DNA of 64,000 bases from contig NW_025964334.1 of NCBI RefSeq assembly GCF_023055435.1, positions 35,898,001 to 35,962,000 of the forward strand, read 5' to 3'. The position numbers were made by a program, and so were the translations under genes. Shown here in pieces: positions 9,580-50,795 of this stretch. The first letter of the stretch is position 1; each line of letters starts with the position of its first letter. Under the pieces are notes generated by a model. It searched no databases. It was not told the DNA's origin and saw only the letters and a list, made by a program, of their open reading frames with translations. The DNA is from Haliotis rufescens (Eukaryota).

Positions 9580-9846
9580 CTCTGAAGATCGGGGGTAGAA
9601 TAGGTCTACAGCAACACATTCTTGCCGTAAAAGGCGACAATGTTTGTTGTAAGAGGCGACTAATGGGATCGGGCGGTCAGGCTCCCTGACTTGGTTGATG
9701 CATGTCATCGTATTCCAACTGCGTGGATCGATACACATGATGTCAATCAGTGGATTGTCTGGTTCAGACTTGATTATTTACAGACCGCCGTCACATGGCT
9801 GGAATATTGCTGAGTGTGGCGTTAAACAACAAACAAACTAAAACAA
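9580..9846 (+). mobile_element. Family C copy (full length)
   Basis: Match to family C consensus. Confidence 0.85.
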
Positions 9847-24095: not shown

Positions 24096-24283
24096 ATCTG
24101 CGACTGTACAAAGAGACAAGCGGCAAGAAGGGCACACGCAAGGACTGGGAGACGGTTTGTGTGACTCTCGCAGACTGGAAGCTCTTCCTCAGGCATTTCC
24201 GCAAAACCACCAACCCTCAGGAAATACTACTATATCACTACCTGAAGGAGGAGTTATTCCCCCTTGTGGAAGTTTCTCTTGAG
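24096..24283 (+). CDS. Coding exon with a WHIM-like (CECR2/RSF1/Ioc3-type) module; putative N-terminal exon of the BCL9 gene
   Basis: Acceptor tttcag|24096 (phase 1) and donor GAG|gtacag at 24284 (phase 0). Translation DLRLYKETSGKKGTRKDWETVCVTLADWKLFLRHFRKTTNPQEILLYHYLKEELFPLVEVSLE resembles, from memory, the CECR2 pattern R(M/L)YKE...W..C.T..W....F......E..LY..L.E...P. Phase matches the next exon. Confidence 0.7.
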
Positions 24284-24485
24284 GTACAGTACATAGATCA
24301 AAGATCAGTTCTAATTTGTAATTTATATTATAATGACGTTTACTGTCATATTTTTAGCAAATATCATCCTTTTATTTGGCAAGTTAAAATTAAACTTATT
24401 CTTGAACTCAACTCAACTCACTCACTGGATTATTCAGTTTTATAAGCCCTATGTTCTAAAGTACAATTGATTCTACAACAGATTA

Positions 24486-24643
24486 GGGGCGGTGGGTTAG
24501 CCTAGCAATTCAAGCGTTCGCTCATCACACCGAAAACCCAGGCTTGATTCCCCACATGGGTACAATGTGTGAAGTCTATCCCATGTGTCCCCTGCCAGAT
24601 ATTGCTGGAATATTGCTAAAAGCTGTGTAAAACCATGCTCACT
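24486..24643 (+). mobile_element. SINE family A copy (intronic)
   Basis: Sequence match to family A. Confidence 0.8.
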
Positions 24644-24780
24644 ACAACAAAATATATTGTCACATGAATATATCGAATTTACATTTTCATGTATCATTTA
24701 CACAATAACTAAATTATTGCTTAAAGATGTGTGGAATTACACTTGCTCACAATATTTATACATCTACTATTCTTTTCCAG

Positions 24781-25087
24781 AACCGAATCTTAAACGAATC
24801 TAGTTGTGAAAATTTGGAGTTGGATCCAGATTTCTTGATGAAACGTGAGCGGGAAGAAGTGAACGCAATGTTGAAAGACTCTGACAGCATGAACCATGAC
24901 GTGAATGGCTCTGCAATCAAGAGTGAGAACGGAATGGACATTAAGGAAGAGAACGCAGAAGATTCAGCTCAGAAAAATCTGGAAAACTGCGGTTCGGCTC
25001 CCAATTCGAACAAAATGGCTAACGGAGACATGGGAAAAGGTGTGGAAGATTTATACAATTTTCTCCCTATGTCCATCTGTGCTGGGT
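24781..25087 (+). CDS. BCL9: BCL9/Legless internal coding exon (acidic, low complexity)
   Basis: Acceptor tcttttccag|24781 (phase 0), open frame NRILNESS...MKREREE...; donor GTAAGT at 25088 or alternative AAG|GTGTGG at 25040, both phase 1 and compatible with the next exon. Confidence 0.72.
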
Positions 25088-25101
25088 GTAAGTTCTGACT
25101 C

Positions 25102-25813
25102 AATGTGCTTAAATACTGGTGCCAAGACTAAATGTGCTTGAATACTGGCGCCAAGATTAAATGTGTTTGAATACTTGTGCCAAGACACACTATGCTTGAA
25201 TACTAGCACCAAGACACAATGTGCTTGAATACTGGCGCCAAGACGAAATGTACTTAAATACTGGCACCAAGACACAATGTGCTTGAATACTGGCACTAAG
25301 ACACAATGTACTTGAATACTGGCACTAAGACACAATGTAATTGAATACTGGCACCAAGTCACAATATGCTTGAATACTGGCGCCAAGACACAATGTACTT
25401 GAATACTGGCACCAAGACACAATATGCTGGAATACTGGCGTCAAGACGAAATGTACTTAAATACTGGAACCAAGACACAATGTACTTGAATACTGGTACT
25501 AAGACACAATGTACTTGAATACTGGCACTAAGACACAATGTACTTGAATTCTGGCGCCAAGGCACAATATGCTTGAATGCTGGCACCAAGACACAATGTA
25601 CTATAATTCTGGCGCCAAGACACAATATGCTTGAATACTGGCGTCAAGACACAATGTACTATAATTCTGGCGCCAAGACACAATGTACTATAATTCTGGC
25701 GCCGAGATACAATATGCTTTAATACTGGCATCAAGACACAATATGCTTGAATACTGGCATTAAGACACAATGTACTTAAATACTGGCACCAAGACACAAT
25801 ATGCTTGAATACT
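25102..25813. repeat. Minisatellite, 29-bp unit, ~24 copies (BCL9 intron)
   Basis: Unit TACTGGCACCAAGACACAATGTRCTTGAA. Confidence 0.95.
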
Positions 25814-26186
25814 TGTGACAAGGCCTCCAGTAACTTGTTACTGTGTAGGAGTGAATGGGATGGTCACAATGATGTTGAGTGTAGATGGACGGCAACCACA
25901 GAAGACATGGCTGTACTCACTGTTTTGTCTGTATCTTCACCATGGGTTGGTCTGGTCCTGGGTGACTCTCATGCTGTGATGTATCTGACAGTGTTGGAGA
26001 ACTAAATTCCCTCCCTGAAAAGTATAAATAAGCCTGTCAGGAATATACGTAGGATTCCAAACCATGTGCCGTTCCTTTGCAGATAAATTGTGGTGGGATC
26101 ATCATGTTGAGCTAAATTGGAATTTTTGTTTTGAAATAGAGGTATTTTAACATTGCATTAAATACAATAGTGCCTTTTCTTTTTAT

Positions 26187-26527
26187 GGGGCCGCCCGGAC
26201 AGCGGAAGGTCCGGGGTTCGATCCTCGGCCGCGTCATACCTAAAGACGTTAAAAGATGGTACTTATTGTTACCCTGTCTGGCGCTCGGCATTAAAGGGCT
26301 TAAACAAGTACTTGTCGTCTCAGCGTCAGTATACTGTGTCTGAGTGGGGTATTCATGTTAAACTGCGGCATGGTATCTCAGTGAGCTAGCACTATAAATC
26401 GGCATCAGTCCGGACAAGTACAAGCACACACAAGCACGCACACGCACACACACACACACGTGCATGCACTATATAAATGCAATAATCTTGGACGTGACGT
26501 TAAACCCAATTTTACCTCACCTCACCT
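26187..26527 (+). mobile_element. SINE family B (tRNA head plus Meta/MESC-like central domain, (CA)n, CACCT-repeat tail)
   Basis: B box GGTTCGATCC, central GTCATACC.AAAGACGTTAAAAGATGGTAC...CCCTG.CTGGCGCTCGGCATTAA, recalled as the MetaSINE domain; tail TGCAATAATCTTGGACGYGACGTTAAACCC. Confidence 0.78.
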
Positions 26528-26533
26528 TTTTAT

Positions 26534-26682
26534 GGGGCGGTGGGGTAGCCTAGTGGTTAAAGCATTTGCTTGTCGAGCCAAAGACCCTGGTTCGATTCCC
26601 CATTTGGGAACATCGAGTGAATCTCATTTCTTGTGTCCCCCACTGTTATGTTACTAAAAGCCTCGTAAAACTATACTCACTC
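26534..26682 (+). mobile_element. SINE family A copy (diverged), directly behind a family B copy
   Basis: Sequence match to family A. Confidence 0.75.
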
Positions 26683-26990
26683 TTCTCTTTATTGGTCCTG
26701 TTATCAGTGAATATAACCTAAAAAGACATAGGTTTGTTGTAACTTTATTTTAACATGAGTTGGGAATTTGTACTGATATTTGCAAAAGAGTTTGGGCTGA
26801 ATATCAGCCTCTGAGCAGGTTTTGATAAATCCCTGACAAGATGACAAGAACAATGGAAGAGTTAACTCCCTTGATCATCCTTGTGGAAGACATTCTCTTC
26901 AAGTCCTGATCATCTTACATGTTTTCTGCATTTGTCATGTACATGGATTATGTTGACGTCAATCAGTTCGCCTGTGGATTGTTTTCACAG

Positions 26991-27062
26991 ATTCACAAAT
27001 AAAGCATGAAGACAGCCCAACAAACAAAACACAGCCGGTGAGCACGGGTCCGAATAAGAAAG
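26991..27062 (+). CDS. BCL9: BCL9/Legless 72-nt coding exon
   Basis: gttttcacag|...AAG|gtaaga; phase 1-1, open (DSQIKHEDSPTNKTQPVSTGPNKK). Too short to appear in the ORF track. Confidence 0.7.
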
Positions 27063-27730
27063 GTAAGAAAGGTACTATCAGACTTCATTATTTTACTTTT
27101 TCTTTCCTATATATACTCACCTCATGACAATGCAGCCTGTGGGGTCATAAAAAGCACCTCAATGGATCAGGTGGTCAGGCTCAGTGACTTGGTTGAGTGC
27201 GCATTATTGCACCCCGACAGCTTGGATCATTGCTCACAATATCGATCACTGGATTGTCTGATCCAGACTAGATTATTAAGAGGCCGTCGTCATACAGATG
27301 GAATATTGCATGTTGCGTTAAAGAACAGACACACAAAGAATCTGATATCTTGATATTTTGGCAGTGTAGGCTGAATTGAAATCGGGGGTCAAAGTCGTAA
27401 CCAAAAAGCTAAATGTGAAGGTTCTGGGGATCTGAGATACACAAACTACATCATCGGGAATTTTATTTGACAAGTTAGTCTTTAAAATACCATCTTGAAT
27501 TCTACTAATTGTGTTAACTTAAGTACATTTTGGTAATTATACTTAACCCTCCTTTCTTCCTTCTCTCTCTCTCTCCCCCCCCCCCCAAAAAAAAATAAAT
27601 AAATAAATAAAAAGACAAACAAACAACAAACACTTGGTCTTGCCTTAAGTGCCATAAGCTGGGGAAATACATTTTTTTTAAAATTATTATAAATATTCTA
27701 ATAACATCTTTTGTTGTGTGTCCTCCACAG

Positions 27731-27999
27731 CCAAGATAGAGAAAGGGAATACGCCAACTAATGATGGGCCTCACAAGTCTCCCGGGTCCCAGCTTCCGCC
27801 ACCGATGCCTCCTGGTGGGCAGACGAAGGCGCAGCAGATCCAGATGTCGATGGAGCCGCCGTTCATGCAGCAGCAGAGCCAGATCTTCGTTTTCTCCACC
27901 AATATGGCCAACAAGGCAGCTGAGTCTGTGGTCCAGGGGCAGTACAAGAGCATGCTAGACTTCCACCTGGACCAGGCCAACACAAAGAAGTTCCTTCAG
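27731..27999 (+). CDS. BCL9: BCL9/Legless exon encoding HD1 (Pygopus PHD-binding)
   Basis: tcctccacag| acceptor (phase 1) and CAG|gtaagg donor (phase 0). SQIFVFSTNMANKAAESVVQGQYKSMLDFH matches human BCL9 HD1 (VYVFSTEMANKAAEAVLKGQVETIVSFH). Confidence 0.95.
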
Positions 28000-28001
28000 G
28001 T

Positions 28002-28538
28002 AAGGAGGTGTTGGAATCTAAGGGGATGGGTGACATGGAATAGGAGGTGTTAGAATCTAAGGGGATGGGTGACATGGAATAGGAGGTGTTGGAGTCTAAG
28101 GGGATGGGCGACATGGAATAGGTGGTGTTGGAATCTAAGGGGATTGGTGACATGGAATAGGAGGTGTTAGAATCTAAGGGGATGGGTGACATGGAATAGG
28201 AGGTGTTAGAATCTAAGGGGATGGGTGACATGGAATAGGAGGTGTTGGAAAATTGGGGGATGGGTGACACGGAATAGGTGGTGTTGGAAAATTGGGGGAT
28301 GGGTGACACGGAATAGGTGGTGTTGGAATCTTACTGGATAGGTGACACAGATTAGGAGGTGTTGGAATATTGGGGGATGGGTGTCACGGAATAGGTAGTG
28401 TTGGAATCTTAGGGGATGGGTGTCACGGAATAGGTAGTGTTGGAATCTTAGGGGATGGGTGACACGGAAGGTGTTGGAATTTAAGGGGATGGGTGACACG
28501 GAATAGGAGGTGTATGTACTAAGGGGATGAGTGACATA
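28002..28538. repeat. G-rich minisatellite, 39-bp unit, ~14 copies (BCL9 intron)
   Basis: Unit AGGAGGTGTTGGAATCTAAGGGGATGGGTGACATGGAAT. Confidence 0.95.
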
Positions 28539-28727
28539 CATCCGTTTTCTTGGAATCAAATCCACTACAAGGGAAGTAACTCTTTGTCAGTGATCAATGA
28601 TTCCAAGGTAATTGTCAGGAAATCTTTAAGATTATTTTATCTTCAGACCTCAAAGATTTTATATATATATATATAAAATATATTTCAGTCATTATATATT
28701 TAAGCTTGTTTCATATGTCATGTTGTT

Positions 28728-28992
28728 AAGATCCCGGTTAGAATAGGTCTTCAGCAACCCATGCTTGTTGTAAAAGCCGACTATGCTTGTTGTAAGAGGC
28801 GACTAGCGGGATCCGGTGGTCAGGCTCACCTGACTTGGTTGATGCATGTCATCGTACCTCATTTGTGTAGATCCGTGCTCATGATGTCAATCACTGGATT
28901 GTCTGGTCCAGACTTGATTATTTACAGACCGCCGCCATATAGCTGGAATATTGCAGAGTGCAGCGTTAAACAACAACAAATAAACAAAACAA
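28728..28992 (+). mobile_element. Family C copy ending ~45 bp before the BCL9 terminal-exon acceptor
   Basis: Match to family C. Confidence 0.85.
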
Positions 28993-29037
28993 ATCATATC
29001 TCAAGTGCCTAAACTGTTTTTTTTGCATTTGTTCAAG

Positions 29038-30879
29038 AAGCACCCCTTGAAGCCAAGTCAGTTTGGCCGAGGCTCTGTGATGCCCATGGGCAACATGCGG
29101 AACCCCAACCCCAACATGATGAAGGCACAGGGCATGGGAGGATTCGGCCCCAATCCTGCCTCCAGCATTGAACAGTGGGTGCAGCAGCAAAACGCAAACC
29201 TCAAGGAACAGGGCATGGGGATGCCAATGAACAGTGTGAACGGGCCGCCTTTCCCAACAAATAACCCACGAATGATGGGCTGGCAACCCAGCCAAGGAGG
29301 GATGGGCCCCAACTATCCCATGTTCTCCGAATTCGATGAATTCAATGCAGTTAACCACATGAACCTTTTGCAAAACAAAGTGCCAGACGAAAGCTTAACG
29401 CCACAACAGCTGCAACGACGAGAAGAACATTTGGCAAGTTTGCGTAAAATTCAGCAGATGTTGTTCCCTGATCAGCCTCGAGGTCCCGGGGGGCCTCAGC
29501 AGCATCAGCAGTTCCCGCCCGGTCCGGGGCCAGGACCGGGGCCGGGGATGATGCAGGAAGGGATGGGGATGCAGGGTGGCATGTTCCAGCAGAGCATGAT
29601 GTCGCCGCACGGGATGATGTCGTCACATCAGGGCATGATGTCCCCCAACCAGGGAATGATGGGCTCTCAGCATGGAATGATGACGTCTCAACAACAGTTC
29701 ATGATGTCGCAAGGAATGTCTCAGTTCGGGCCAGGTGGGCCCCCACCTCAGAACAATTTAAGCCCTGCTCAAAGAGAGTGGCTGCGATTGCAGCAAGAAT
29801 TTTATAATGAAAAGCGTCGTATAACAATGAATCCAAACATTGATCATAATGGCCCACCCCCACCATATTACAGTTCGATTGCTCATAAACGACCAGGAGC
29901 TATGGGGATGAGTGCATCTACCTCGCCTAATATGAATGGACCTCAAATGCATGGTATGGGCACTGAACAGGAGATGGGTATGTTTCCGAGGCCACGGAGG
30001 CCATCACATCCACAGATGGATCCCGGCCCAATGATGGGGGGCCCCGGATTCAGCCCACCAATGCCCCCTCAAGGGGCAGGTTTTGACTCTGGCATGATGC
30101 CTGGTAGAGGTGGGCCAGGTATGATTCCACCATCAGTGTCTCAGATGAAAAATTCTCAGATTTCATTACATCGAGCGGGCAATCCTGAACAATTTCAGCC
30201 GGAATTGGCACCGTCTGGTCCACCAGGGCCTCAGAAAAATAACAAACCTCCGCCCAGTTATGCCCAAGCTCAAAAACGAAAAAGAGACGATCATCTCGAG
30301 GATCTATATAAAAACTTACAACCCACACCTTCACCTCAGCAAATAAATTATCTGAATCAGTTTGAAGGGCAGGAATTGACTATTACAAAACAGTTGAACT
30401 CTGCATATCGTGATTCAGGCATACCCAATGAATCGCAGCCCCCACACTTACCAAATCACTTCCAACAAAATCAAGTGCATTCGCCTATGCATGGACCAGG
30501 CTCAAACAAAGGACCCATGTCAAACTCTAGCCAGAACTCTAGTGCTGGGCCATTATCAAGCCCAGGGCCTATATCAGGTCCGTCCCCCCTGTCTGGCCCC
30601 TCTCCCATGTCTGGTGCTAACATGAGATTATCACATTATGATCCGCCATCCAACAACAGCATATCTAGTGCTCCAACCACTCCTACAGCTAAATCGTCCA
30701 TGTCGAATATCACATCAGCAAGTCTTGCCAATTTGGCAAAAGGCGTGGAACATTTGTCAAACCAAATGCAACAAAATATGATGCAAGGTGGTCCGTTTCA
30801 CAGTATTCAGGTACAAGGACAAATGAACAATGGCAATGGTGGTAATGCCTCTCAGGGGGGACCTCCTCAGCAGCAGCAG

Positions 30880-30911
<32 letters not shown>

Positions 30912-32451
30912 GCAACTACCCCTTCCTCCACATGGTCCTCCTCATCAACAACATCCGCAACATCCTCAACATCCTCAACAACATCCGCATCAACATCCAC
31001 CACATCTGCATCCTCAAGGACAACCTCAACCTCCCCATCCCATTCAACAGCACCAGCAGCATTCAACTAACACTTCCAGTATTGCGCAAACAACAACTAC
31101 TCCAAGTGTGAACAATACATATGTCAATGCAACCATGTCCATTCAGCAATTGAACATTCAGAGTGTGAACGCGCCCAACAATCCTGGTGTGGGCAATTAT
31201 AACCCTTCCATGCAGGTTCAGCAGATGAACAGTGAAACGTCTCAGATGAACGTTCCCGGGGGACCGCAGGGTCCCGGAGGGCCCATGCAACCTCACTGTT
31301 CCCCTATGTCCTCAGGGCCGTCCATGTCACAGTCACAGATGATGACGACTAGCCAGTGTCCTCCATCAATGGGGGTTAAGGCACCTCATTTCTCAAGTCC
31401 CAATCATCCCTCCGCGGGTGGAGGTCCCAGCAATCCAATGATGGGTCCTGGGGGCCCAGGGAGAATGAGCCCATCGAATTTCCCCGCCAGCTCCGTGGGC
31501 AATGCAAATGTCCAGATCCAACCCAAAGCACCCAATACTATCCAATATCTACCAGCAAATCCACCAGCTTCACAACCCAACATGGGTGGTCAGAAGAGAC
31601 CTGATTTGGAATTTATGCAAAACTTCTCACCACCACTCACAAACATAGAAGCGAAAGCTCCAACATCGACTTTGCAATACTTTCCAAACAATTCTCCAAC
31701 ACACAGTGGCCGACCAGGAATTCCTTCCCCTTTCTCACACCAACAGCACATGGCCATGCAGCAATCAATGATGATGCGAGAACCAAATCACGAGTTCCCT
31801 GGCATGCCTGGGTCTCGACCAGGACCTGGCATGCACCATCCATCAGCAGGGATGTCAGGCATGGACGGGCCCCAAGGTCCAATGGGGCCGATGGGCCCAA
31901 TGGGTCCCGGTGGGAACATGCCGCCAGAGGCCATGATGAGCATGGGGGGACCGGGAATGGGTCCCGGAGGGCCGGGGCCGATGCCTGGAATGAACCCCGG
32001 ACCTCAGGGTCCCATGGGACCTATGTCGCCTATGGATCCACGCAGTCACATGGGCAATGGTCCGAATCCTGCCTACATGCCCAACGGACAATCGATGATG
32101 AGCCAGAGTATGATGCAAAGTCATATGCAGATGCAGGGGCCCGGACCCGGACCCGGACCTGGTGGAATGCCTAACATGCCTATGCAGGGTCCGGGGCCTG
32201 GCATGCCGCGACAGTCCAATCAACCCATGGGAATGCCAGGTCAGGGGAATCCATCCATGCCAGGTGGTCCCGGATGCCCCGGGGGACCAGGAGGTCCTGG
32301 CGGGCCGGGCTATAACGCACAATATCAGCAGTTTCAGCAACAGTTATATTCTCAGAGCAGACAGCGACAGATGTCTCCAATGGGAGCGATGATGGGGAGT
32401 CCTGGACAACCGTATATGGGCATGATGCCAAATATGCATGGGCCTACATGA
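29038..32451 (+). CDS. BCL9: BCL9/Legless large terminal coding exon: HD2 (beta-catenin-binding), HD3, long P/G/M/Q-rich disordered region
   Basis: About 1137-codon open frame after the polypyrimidine tract and AAG. HD2 PDESLTPQQLQRREEHLASLRKIQQMLFPD (~29380-29472) matches human PDGLSQEQLEHRERSLQTLRDIQRMLFPD. HD3 SPAQREWLRLQQEFYNEKRR (~29761-29820) matches human TPEQIAWLKLQQEFYEEKRR. Stop TGA ends at 32451. Confidence 0.96.
30868..30915 (+). repeat. Coding CAG/CAA repeat (poly-Q, 16 residues) in BCL9
   Basis: Directly visible; followed by a PQH/HPQ-rich tract. Confidence 0.9.
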
Positions 32452-46064: not shown

Positions 46065-48268
46065 ATCACATCCAGATCCTGGGCTCCGTGTCGGACAAGG
46101 ACTCAAGAGCTAGCAGTTATCAACATGAGAGACGCCCGTTGAATGAGTATGAAGGAACCGTCCCAAGCTTCTTCAAGGACAGGAAAGGTCAATCACAGTT
46201 GGGAACCCTTGGTGATTCAAAACTCTGCCTAAAACTGCAGCTGAAATCAGTCAGAAGCGAGGCTGCATCCCGATGGAAAAAACACCTTGCGAGGGTTGAT
46301 GAAGATTCTGATGATAGTCCATTTGCCTGTGCTGCTGCTGCTGCGGAAAGCGGTGAGCAAAGAGGAAACAGACTTGGGGAGGGTCGGGGAGTTGCACAGT
46401 TTGAGGACACAGGGCTCGTGAAAGGGGCCATCAAAGATGGTCAGGACATCCAAGTGGATGAATACAAACTACAAGCTAATCATTTTCTGATTTTCGATCT
46501 CTTAAATGTTCCTCTGAAAGATCTAAAGAAAGGTCGTCGGAACCGAAATGCTAAACAAAGCCAGGTAGGTAAGCTACGTCATGATCGAATGGGACATGGG
46601 AAGGATATAAAACACTGGCTTGATCGGTGTCAGCGTCAGTCTGACCATAGTGAGCAGCACCATGAAGAGCCGGATCTTCACCAGGGACATCCAAAGTGTG
46701 TCACGGTCAGAATGTTTAAGGAAAAACATGATCGACATGGTAAGAAGCCTGCCCCAAATCATCGGAGACACTCAAGCCGAAACACCACGAAACAAGTTTG
46801 TCTTGCAAACCACGAAGAACATGACACGGTTTGCGAAAAACGCCAGCATCAAAATCAAGGTCACTCGCAAACTCGGGATAATGGAGGACCTGAAATGAAG
46901 ACCAGGACAAAGCAGACTCAAGACCACCATCAGGACAAATGTATCGAGAACCAGGATTCGGAAAGAGGTCAGAGTCAAGGTCAGGATCGAGGTCAAGGTC
47001 AGGGTCAAGAACGCCATTCACTACTTGTGTCACAAGACCTTGCTTTGCATCCACTGAGAAGGACGAAAGCCTACCTGACCCTTCTATCGCTCTCAAACAT
47101 CTCTTTACACGAGTCCGAGCTGGCTGATATATCATCCAGTGAGTCTGACGAGGATTCGGTAAGGTACAAAGAACCAACAGCGACCAAACTCTCGTCACAA
47201 GAGACACAGCATGCTGTCGCAAGAAACGGTTGCGAGGTGCCTCGGGCAGAGTTCATCTCCGCGGACACAGGTCACGGCCATTCCCAGGTGTGTTCTCGTA
47301 CATCCGGGTTAGTACGTCACGGTGCCACAGATGATAGACAGGAAGTCGAACCACAGCAGCAAGACTCTTCAGATGTCTCTGGGGAAAGTTCACTGTTTCA
47401 AAGATCTACACCTGAAAACAGCTTTACCGGAAAGAGCATCAATGGATATGATTTTGGGAAGATCTTTTCTGGCGGTGCGTCTTCTGTCATCTTTAAAGTT
47501 ACAAAGGGAGGCAACACATATGCTGCTAAAGTTTTCAAACGAATTCATCCCTACGAGGAAAGGCTTCTCAACATCTCTAAGCGTGAATACAAGATTATGA
47601 AGAAGTTGAACCATCCACACATTGTTAAAGTTTACGATTATTTTGTGTTCCGCCAACATGGAGTTATCGTCATGGAATACGTAGAAACCTCAGAACTGTG
47701 GACATTCTTCGACAAATCAAATTGGGCAATGTCCCTACCGATCCTTAAGAAAATTCTGTGGGGCATTCTCAGCGCCTTGAGACACATCCACAAACATCGT
47801 ATCTCCCACATGGATATCAAGACCAATAACATGCTCGTCAACAGCAAAGGGTTTGCCAAGATAACAGACTTTGGAGGAGCGGTGAAATTCAACAGATTCT
47901 TCTCAAAGCGCCACGTGGTGAACTTCTTCACGCCCGACTTCGCCCCTCCTGAGAAGCAATGGCAGCGTGAGAGTGGGGAGTTGTGTGTGGTTCACTACAA
48001 GCGTTACGACATGTGGAGTGTCGGGGTGATGTTGTATCACTTGTATACTGGGAGGCTCCCCTACACGCTGCCAGAGGGGAGACAGTACCTCCCTGCTAAG
48101 CTGTTCACGGGTGTGGTTGACCTGCCGTCGGGGGTGAAGGAGGATGCAGAGGTTCTGTCGCTGGTCAGACAGTGTATGCAAGTGGATCCGCTGGATAGAA
48201 TGACGGCCAAAGAGGCCTTGGCACATCCGTTTTTTGATTCCGTGCGACACAAAGGAGTCAAGAAATGA
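46065..48268 (+). CDS. Ser/Thr protein kinase (CAMK-like, non-RD) with long disordered N-terminus and C-terminal catalytic domain (~47446-48240)
   Basis: Uninterrupted ORF with kinase motifs: degenerate Gly loop FSGGASSVI, YAAK, alphaC KRE, HMDIKTNN, DFG, TPDFAPPE, DMWSVG, DRMTA..AL.HPFF. Confidence 0.93.
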
Positions 48269-48644: not shown

Positions 48645-48910
48645 ACTACTTTGTGTTATTTTTCAAACACAACATGTTTTGCTGAATCAATCAACTGAGA
48701 GATATGTAATTAAATGCTGTAGTTGGCAATATTTCGGCCGTATCATGGAAATGTATAAATAATGTCATCTAAACTATAGTGGTTGACAGCACGAGCAACA
48801 TCCCGGCCGACGGGGGACGATGACACACAATCAACCAGGTCAAAAATTAAACCACGATTTTAGTTTTCCGGCCAAGATCAACATGCACAACTGCGAACTC
48901 GTGTACACTG

Positions 48911-49512
48911 GAACACCAAGACGTGAGTGAGTGAGTGAGCGAACACCAAGACGTGAGTGAGTGAGTGAGTGAGCGAACACCAAGACGTGAGTGAGTGAGT
49001 GAACACCAAGACGTGAGTGAGTGAGTGAACACCAAGACGAGAGTGAGTGAGTGAGTGAACACCAAGACGTGAGTGAGTGAGTGAGTGAACACCAAGACGT
49101 GAGTGAGTGAGTGAACACCAAGACGTGAGTGAGTGAGTGAACACCAAGACGTGAGTGAGTGAGTGAACACCAAGACGTGAGTGAGTGAACACCAAGACGT
49201 GAGAGAACACCAAGACGTGAGTGAGTGAGTGAGTGAGTGAACACCAAGACGTGAGTGAGTGAGTGAACACCAAGACGTGAGTGAGTGAGTGNNNNNNNNN
49301 NNNNNNNNNNNNNNNNNNNNNNNNNNNNNNNNNNNNNNNNNNNNNNNNNNNNNNNNNNNNNNNNNNNNNNNNNNNNNNNNNNNNNNNNNNNNNNNNNNNN
49401 NNNNNNNNNNNNNNNNNNNNNNNNNNNNNNNNNNNNNNNNNNNNNNNNNNNNNNNNNNNNNAGTGAGTGAGTGAACACCAAGACGTGAGTGAGTGAGTGA
49501 GTGAGTGAGTGG
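48911..49512. repeat. Compound satellite: GAACACCAAGAC plus variable (GTGA)n; spans assembly gap
   Basis: Constant 12-mer separated by 2-6 tetramer units; Ns at 49292-49461. Confidence 0.93.
49292..49461. other. Assembly gap (170 N)
   Basis: Run of N. Confidence 1.
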
Positions 49513-50795
49513 GTGAGCATGATCACTCGGGGTATATGGGGTTTTATGTGTCCCGCATAAGGTTTTATACCACAAGCTCTCGTGATCCTGCTACAACTTA
49601 TAATATCTGACCAAAACATGTAGACGTTATTCCACATAACATATATTTGCTTCATGTCAAATGGTGTAATGGACAAAAAGAACAAGTACACAAGGCTGTC
49701 TTGGTGGCCATGAATTTTATGGATGAGAATTCCGAGAGCAGTGACACCATCACTTGGATCATTTATGCAAAGTATCTGCTTGTTTAAAGGAGTTGCCAAA
49801 TATGCAACAGTTTGCGACTTCCAGTCAGGGAGCTAACAAAAAAGCAGCATTTCTTTCTTGCAAAAGGAAAATCATAAACTTGACCTTTTCTTATGACAAC
49901 TGTGCCAACCGGGCCCCTTTCAACACAATAAATTGGTGATGATTACGTGGAAACCATCTTAACATCAATACAACTTATAAGTTCAAGGTCACTTCAACAC
50001 CTCATCAAGTGGAGTGTGAGTGAGTGAGTGAGTGAGTGAGTGAGTCAGCCAACAATGGGCTCAATTAATAAATACAACACTAAATACAGCATCAAATGAC
50101 TGTAGCGCTCGTAAAATGTCTACGTTGAAAAGAAAGGGTTCCTTTCCTTGGTTGTTCTTGAGCGCGCGCACGCACGCACGCGCACACACACACACATAAA
50201 CAGAGAGGATGTGCAGCATGACGTTCAATGAGTTTTGCGATGTGACAGTTTCTGGAAGGCTGGCTGTACCTCTTTAAGAGTGCGTTTTGAGGCCCATTAC
50301 GACCTGACTCGCGTCTTATCTACTCGCCAAGTACCGATGGGATACATACTAGTATCTCAAAGCACCCAATTCCGCAAGCTTCTTACACAAATCACCAGAT
50401 TCAAGAACGGAGACAGTCCTGTTTCAAGACATTGGACACTGACAAAACTATGGACATACGTGAGTACACAATATATTCTAAGGCCTGTTACTCATTGCCG
50501 CGGTCACTTCGTTGACCCATTGTATTGTATGTTGTGATTGTAAATTTAAAACTGTGTGTTTGAAGGTCATTTGTTCATTATTATCTTGCGTGGTCATTTG
50601 CTTATTTCACAATTTCTTTCTGTACATAACAATTAGCCTTTGCTAGATTTGGAAATCACCTGGTAACAAAGATAATAGCACCTAGATCAGTGGTAGGACC
50701 CCATTGGTGAAAAGTAAGTTATCCTTAAGTCCACTTCGTATCAAAGTGTCAGCTTCTTGCGTGAGGAAAGCCTAACGTGACACAGGTCTTTCATA

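Follow-up and report, generated by a model that had tools for sequence, protein, structure and literature searches.

The 64,000-nt stretch of the Haliotis rufescens genome analysed here (the window) contains the 3' part of a BCL9/Legless gene. Our reading, to which we give a probability of about 0.75, is that this gene has 11 coding exons, that it encodes an N-terminal DDT-WHIM module paralogous to that of CECR2 together with HD1, HD2 and a candidate HD3, and that its long form may act as an ISWI accessory subunit, a step to which we give about even odds. The gene spans approximately 134 kb on the + strand (C556:35796172-35930451). Six coding exons of the long form are located upstream of the window and five inside it, and seven encode the N-terminal module (Table 1). 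Window positions are those of the 64,000-nt stretch, and C556 positions are contig coordinates of the same genome (G000, + strand). BCL9/Legless is viewed as a largely unstructured adaptor, whose folded contacts are limited to short helices for Pygo and beta-catenin, and this view derives from human, mouse and fly.

The window contains the sole BCL9 orthologue of the genome

The beta-catenin-binding helix (HD2, in ex5) matched the Pfam family BCL9 (PF11502; score 42.8 bits, cut-off 25). Because this was the only PF11502 match in the 1.33-Gb genome, the locus is the sole BCL9/Legless orthologue of the genome. The HD1 encoded by ex4 was 48-78% identical to the HD1 of named BCL9 models. When the family profile was compared with PDB sequences, it recovered HD1 of Legless (chain 3zpv, E 1.4e-9) and of human BCL9 (2vpe, E 2.5e-6); beyond HD1 and HD2 chains, this search gave nothing but low-complexity noise. 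HD3 has no profile; by eye, the candidate LSPAQREWLRLQQEFYNEKRR resembles the HD3 of relatives, for example, AQREWMRLQEEFY in P0001.

Exon borders were read directly and then checked by script for frame and stops. All five exons in the window have AG/GT borders, and their chain remains open for 4203 or 4251 nt (two ex2 donors; the single base carried over from upstream is included), has no internal stop and ends on TGA, confirming the canonical splice sites and unbroken phases described in an earlier sequence-only reading of the window. The same reading had assigned the first of these exons, exF, to the BCL9 gene, and this assignment stands: the frame of exF continues into HD1, HD2 and the HD3 candidate, and the same join occurs in other phyla.

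exF is single-copy in the genome. A phmmer search with exF against 1.84 billion representative proteins yielded 29 matches at E<=1e-3, including 12 at E<=1e-10. Conservation of exF at the BCL9 loci of other species was evident, with 67% identity to a chiton BCL9 model (residues 162-224) and 50-66% identity to orthologues in six other phyla (E down to 1e-19). Some matches were discarded. P0041 and the frog (Engystomops) entry P0026, the only vertebrate one, contain tandem repeats and were false matches produced by seven to eight weak repeat matches adding up. P0023, 98% identical to exF, reads into the intron and is a genomic open reading frame (ORF), not a transcript.

Upstream exons predicted to complete the module

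The sequence-only reading had found no DDT, WHIM1 or start exon upstream and had regarded the module as partial. The module seemed so because the window edge excluded six upstream exons, including an ATG exon, which lie from 102 kb to 1.1 kb before the window; exE ends 1.1 kb before its first base. A tblastn search of 160 kb of upstream sequence with the chiton N-terminus gave five collinear + strand matches (exA-exE), each with AG/GT borders and fitting phases. Within the window, the same query matched only exF, and the remaining module exons lie outside. The start exon (ex0) encodes MPRKSKSQ and matches the orthologue starts MPRKNKSQ, MPRKSRS and MPRKLKSQ.

The six upstream exons have a combined length of 493 nt (164 codons and a further base completed by exF), giving a whole coding sequence of 4695 or 4743 nt and a protein of 1564 or 1580 amino acids. 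Large introns (49, 28, 17 and 25 kb) lie between the upstream exons. The six genomic pieces tile the module in an alignment of nine orthologues with no gaps and no overlaps. DDT, WHIM1 and WSD/GxD are all predicted to be encoded by in-phase upstream exons, and the seven-exon module (DDT, WHIM1 and WSD with GxD) appears complete and compact, with approximately 225 amino acids.

Homology of the head to DDT-WHIM modules

The exons of this genome were searched one by one, and orthologous database proteins were used for profile searches, folding and complex prediction. Homology of the module to the DDT-WHIM class is well supported, and the closest branch appears to be the CECR2 type. In the chiton module, Pfam matches below threshold occurred in the right order (DDT, E 0.0085; WHIM1, E 0.012; WSD, E 0.21). 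Within an alignment of 21 BCL9-type proteins and fungal relatives, DDT was matched in 7 (at E<=1), WHIM1 in 6, WSD in 3 and the KIAA2026 helical domain in 6. The best E-value of WHIM1 (PF15612) was 0.012, with all scores below the cut-off of 19.1 bits and with the right position, between DDT and GxD, and that of the weak WSD matches was 0.0056. In the profile check envisaged in the sequence-only reading, exF alone gave no Pfam match beyond noise, and coral orthologues reached the cut-off of DDT (PF02791; 22.7 and 22.8 bits versus 22).

The GxD signature of WSD/WHIM2 and the aromatic strand that follows it are present in this gene, across exE and exF. In the alignment (A1), G149 and D151 of this signature are near-invariant and Y157 and R164 are invariant, with exE contributing VGQDALNNNYWYF and exF contributing LRLYKE. 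Additionally, a coral CECR2-like protein with a GCN5/CECR2-type bromodomain (P0086) aligned collinearly with the coral BCL9-type module over three blocks, namely, the start of DDT (E 1e-3), WHIM1 through GxD-YWYF-RLYRE (E 6e-5) and the exF-equivalent W..VC..W...F...LY.YL..P (E 3e-10); its database-wide E-value was 4e-8. The fungal DDT-PHD proteins P0044 and P0047 were direct phmmer matches of exF, and the nearest language-model feature clusters were WHIM1/DDT/WSD or RSF1-like.

AlphaFold2 modelled the coral protein, supplied with the family alignment, at a predicted local distance difference test (pLDDT) score of ~90 over residues 1-250, and the exF-equivalent region scored 87-98 in the AlphaFold2 models. 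In an exhaustive comparison with 48,161 PDB chains, the top structural match of the coral model (range 1-243) was Ioc3 of ISW1a (2y9z_B, 231 residues aligned), with a Z of 10.7, which is within the chance range for helical models, and a high root mean square deviation (rmsd) of 8.2. For a sub-model running from WHIM1 to exF, Ioc3 came second and tied with other folds (Z 5.1); it was the only match covering the whole sub-model (170/184 residues, rmsd 4.6 A). Thus, the Pfam order, the P0086 blocks, the Ioc3 fold match and the RSF1-like clusters all agree with the earlier recognition of the exF motif as a WHIM region of the CECR2/RSF1/Ioc3 type.

exF also gave weak Pfam PH matches (PH_MRCK, E 0.057), and an AlphaFold2 model of P0033 (residues 82-184, the equivalent of exE plus exF) showed many weak PH/PTB/FERM-F3 matches (Z 4-5). 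These matches are not significant; a PH-like half-barrel within WHIM2 is possible according to the model.

Distribution of the fused architecture

A search with ex5 recovered BCL9 relatives, among them a RefSeq model from the chiton Liolophura sinensis (P0003, 1579 amino acids), in which 161 residues come first, then the exF copy at 162-224 and then HD1 and HD2. The combination of DDT-WHIM, HD1 and HD2 was also found in Annelida (Owenia), Nemertea (Tubulanus), Chelicerata (the horseshoe crabs Limulus and Tachypleus and the scorpion Centruroides), Odonata (Hetaerina and Ischnura) and Cephalochordata (Branchiostoma belcheri and, as a partial model, B. lanceolatum). Some of these full-length proteins were contributed by a word-indexed search that used the chiton N-terminus as query. 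Local BLAST of chiton segments placed the elements of the relatives in the order DDT-like, WHIM1-like, exF-like, HD1 and HD2, and order, strand and reading phase are identical in at least seven phyla. The sea spider Nymphon has the module and HD1 only, in a partial model that stops before HD2. Reef corals (Pocillopora damicornis and P. meandrina, both represented by P0034, with relatives in Oculina) have the module and HD1, with no Pfam BCL9 (HD2) match and an HD2-like helix recognised by eye only.

The complete 988-amino-acid coral ORF, module and HD1 included, is carried by Logan contigs of 3.2-5.5 kb, and scorpion contigs of ~7 kb join the exF equivalent to HD1 and HD2. Because their sizes leave almost no room for introns, these contigs are cDNA-like. 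Since the module and HD1 are present in corals as well as in bilaterians, this architecture predates the cnidarian-bilaterian split. The sequence-only reading had tied the fusion to this lineage; its occurrence from corals to amphioxus contradicts this and points to an ancestral fusion that the lineages studied to date have lost.

Among the exF matches in the protein library, there were no vertebrate BCL9 and no dipteran proteins, and human and fly BCL9/Legless are not known to carry a DDT-WHIM head. A full-text literature search found no paper linking BCL9 with a DDT domain, and the papers on BCL9 with WHIM or ISWI were irrelevant to such a link. The protein models are public, and as far as we have seen, a DDT-WHIM head on BCL9 has apparently not been described.

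Comparison with known systems

CECR2 is a subunit of the CERF complex and a partner of SNF2L/SNF2H. It shares with the BCL9 module the motif order W-E..FC.LF..F (DDT), the L..L.D helix (WHIM1) and G.D....YWYF..RLY.E (WSD/WHIM2), followed by W..VC..L.(D/E)W...F......E..LY..L...(F/L)P, and the CECR2 of this genome has the same motifs. However, CECR2 contains an insertion of ~100-170 amino acids between RLYKE and W..VC that does not occur in the BCL9 gene, and YWYF and RLYKE, which lie in one exon in CECR2, are split by an intron in the BCL9 gene. No intron position common to the two genes was found at the YWYF/RLYKE point. Downstream of the module, the BCL9 gene has HD1, HD2 and the HD3 candidate, where CECR2 has a bromodomain. 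The genome has 28 bromodomain matches; all of them fall outside C556:35.79-35.93 Mb and its neighbourhood, and none occurs within megabases of the BCL9 gene.

The CECR2 of this genome is located on the same contig, on the minus strand, 23 Mb from the BCL9 gene (Table 1). Its exons comprise DDT (EIRKWWEIPCVAHFCSLF), WHIM1, GxD-YWYF-RLYKED, the exF-like stretch (RWHLVCQSLVDWEQLAENF..LY..EDFLPE) and the bromodomain, and over the exF-like stretch, it is only 28% identical to exF. Because this gene lies so far away with DDT, WHIM1, GxD and bromodomain exons of its own, exF is not a stray piece of CECR2.

The BCL9 described here shares the order HD1-HD2 with human BCL9/BCL9L and Drosophila Legless, and its HD3 candidate and low-complexity C-terminal tail come next, as in those proteins; unlike them, it has ~225 structured residues ahead of the linker that leads to HD1. 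Ioc3 of yeast ISW1a (PDB 2y9y/2y9z) is the best fold match (231 of ~243 residues), yet identity is only 14-15%, and Ioc3 is much larger than this module, with extra DNA-binding inserts. In RSF1, BAZ1A/ACF1, BAZ1B, BAZ2A/B and BPTF, the module is paired with PHD, bromo, WAC or MBD readers, not with Wnt docking helices. The helical domain of KIAA2026/BRD10 (PF23450, cut-off 27.8 bits) precedes the bromodomain in that family; six members of the BCL9-type alignment have collinear matches to it over DDT and WHIM1, all below that cut-off.

Proposed role of the module and alternative explanations

To our knowledge, all DDT-WHIM proteins tested form ISWI complexes (BAZ1A/B, BAZ2A/B, BPTF, CECR2, RSF1, Itc1, Ioc3 and plant DDT proteins), and these include all mammalian DDT proteins. 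Since the characterised DDT-WHIM families dock ISWI, the most likely role of long-form BCL9 would be that of an ISWI accessory subunit that brings spacing activity to TCF/beta-catenin/Pygo complexes, a role to which we give about even odds. According to a review (PMC8536118), the helical module built from DDT, WHIM1 and WHIM2 binds both linker DNA and the ISWI SLIDE domain, and all WHIM proteins are postulated to be ISWI binders. In such a mechanism, the DDT-WHIM head would dock the SLIDE/HSS part of the ISWI ATPase and touch linker DNA. With Pygo held by HD1 and beta-catenin by HD2, long BCL9 would bring a nucleosome-spacing motor to TCF/beta-catenin/Pygo enhancer complexes. The genome has its own ISWI gene, in which a SLIDE exon was located.

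More tentatively, and at somewhat less than even odds, the ancestral animal BCL9 may have been an ISWI accessory subunit, representing an eighth DDT-WHIM family beside BAZ1A/B, BAZ2A/B, BPTF, CECR2 and RSF1. The original Wnt enhanceosome would then have had its own nucleosome-spacing motor, and the link would have been lost independently in vertebrates and flies. It might have gone unnoticed because BCL9 was studied only in vertebrates and flies, which would have lost it. If the head binds ISWI, Wnt signalling would have direct physical access to nucleosome spacing, and model organisms would offer a clear example of repeated domain loss. Even without ISWI binding, the architecture would be both ancient and new for this scaffold family, which is relevant to cancer.

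Several observations weigh against a long-form BCL9 with a DDT-WHIM head that recruits ISWI. The exon chain of this animal was read from genomic DNA alone. Most orthologues score under the Pfam cut-offs, and exA, exB, exC and exD, searched singly, gave noise only, in addition to the lack of a match for exF. The Ioc3 scores given above belong here as well, and neither of the two models had a Foldseek match in the PDB at E<=0.001. Moreover, several related models lack the module, which might be dispensable or isoform-specific: the bivalve BCL9 models P0002, P0008 and P0013 begin where the internal Met of ex2 (MKREREEV, 24838) aligns, and the scorpion RefSeq isoform X1 starts at the equivalent Met, whereas X2 has the module. 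Finally, complex prediction with residues 1-250 of the coral module and the 70-amino-acid SLIDE exon gave a score of 0.00, in which the partner was a partial domain that folded poorly, so that this result is no evidence either way.

The most serious alternative, possible and somewhat less probable than ISWI recruitment, is that the module is a genuine part of BCL9 and, instead of recruiting ISWI, binds DNA, nucleosomes or a different partner, or serves only to stabilise the scaffold. The related KIAA2026/BRD10 domain, to which the six members mentioned above match weakly, may have a role of this kind. The module also lacks the insertions and the PHD/bromodomain readers of classical ISWI subunits, the strands from GxD to exF are superficially PH-like, and the complex prediction, itself no evidence either way, lends no support to ISWI binding. 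These points are opposed by the GxD signature and the DDT/WHIM1 helices, which are conserved family-wide, and by the SLIDE binding known for DDT-WHIM modules and postulated for all WHIM proteins. A further alternative, which we consider less likely than not, concerns expression: the long form would be rare or silent, and the working BCL9 would begin with Met 24838 or arise from an internal promoter, with use of the upstream exons limited to certain tissues or stages. The starts of the bivalve models and of scorpion X1 fit this explanation, as do oyster transcript-like contigs that begin at or just before the equivalent Met and the large introns between the upstream exons. However, seven module exons that are intact, in phase and strongly conserved (for exF, 57-67% identity to other phyla) are not expected of unused exons, and a rare long form would in any case be compatible with the explanation that we prefer. 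Indeed, it is plausible from the sequence that a short conventional BCL9, translated from Met 24838 or produced from an internal promoter, exists alongside the long form, as the sequence-only reading had suggested: the ATG is present, and the bivalve models and scorpion X1 start there.

Because this gene was read from genomic DNA and several orthologue entries are automatic models, gene predictors could have merged two adjacent genes, a small DDT-WHIM protein and a conventional BCL9. This is very improbable, given that exF contains no stop and, ending in phase 0, leads into ex2 in the same frame, that the cDNA-like coral and scorpion contigs hold both parts in one ORF, and that separate genes would not have kept order, strand and phase in at least seven phyla since the cnidarian-bilaterian ancestor. 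The idea that exF is open by chance or is a decayed remnant of a CECR2 copy could appeal to its lack of a Pfam match of its own and has a negligible probability: the phmmer matches to exF and the distance and low identity of the true CECR2 oppose it, and the conservation of exF across phyla together with its gapless fit in the orthologue alignment rules it out.

Exon coordinates and other features of the window

Table 1. Coordinates of the BCL9 gene, compared genes and other features (window positions unless preceded by a contig handle)
Feature	Position	Strand	Borders and phase	Content
ex0, start exon	C556:35796172-35796196	+	ATG CCC AGG AAG AGT AAA AGT CAA G/gtaggg	MPRKSKSQ
exA	C556:35844994-35845100	+		..DPYEDIRAMWELPY..TIQ
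exB	C556:35873416-35873510	+		found by tblastn with chiton N-terminus
exC	C556:35879296-35879410	+		found by tblastn with chiton N-terminus
exD	C556:35880114-35880209	+		LRVVKWVVDE...; single-copy in genome
exE	C556:35896891-35896945	+		RPVEVGQDALNNNYWYFD plus G; GxD signature (VGQDALNNNYWYF)
exF, last module exon	24096-24283	+	acceptor tttcag/AT, donor GAG/gtacag; phase 1 in, 0 out	end of WSD/WHIM2 strand (LRLYKE) and CECR2-type W..VC..L.DW...F......E..LY.YL..ELFP
ex2, acidic linker	24781-25039 or 24781-25087	+	acceptor ttccag/AAC; alternative donors 25039 (AAG/gtgtgg) and 25087 (GGT/gtaagt), either leaving phase 1	internal ATG at 24838
ex3, short linker exon	26991-27062	+	phase 1 in, 1 out	
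ex4	27731-27999	+	phase 1 in, 0 out	HD1 (Pygo PHD-binding helix) 27880-27975
ex5	29038-32451	+	stop TGA	HD2 29395-29508; HD3 candidate 29758-29820; long Q/P/M/G-rich tail
CECR2 of this genome	C556:12840555-12872654	-		DDT, WHIM1, GxD, exF-like and bromodomain exons
SLIDE exon of ISWI gene	C583:34219321-34219536			
Interspersed repeat	24440-24640			intronic
Interspersed repeat ORFs	458-691, 9653-9838, 28761-29012			
Minisatellite	25097-25813			29 bp x 24.7 copies, ex2-ex3 intron
Minisatellite	28003-28536			39 bp x 13.8 copies
Kinase ORF	46088-48268	+		726 amino acids, uninterrupted
Simple-repeat tract	~48840-49800			CACT/THSL type
N run	49292-49461			170 N

Two minisatellites flank exons of the BCL9 gene: one begins 10 bases past the 25087 donor of ex2 (58 past the 25039 donor), and the other lies directly past the ex4 donor. 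An abundant short interspersed repeat occurs in the introns in both orientations, and many further ORFs elsewhere belong to it. Its translated frames read ..GSGGQA.LTWLMHVIV.. and ..IAGILL..ALN.. and are unrelated to the BCL9 gene.

Approximately 13.6 kb downstream of BCL9, the window contains an intronless-looking kinase gene with a C-terminal Pfam Pkinase match (E 3e-47, residues 463-716) and a long N-terminus that is basic or of low complexity. Further downstream, the N run is located inside the simple-repeat tract.

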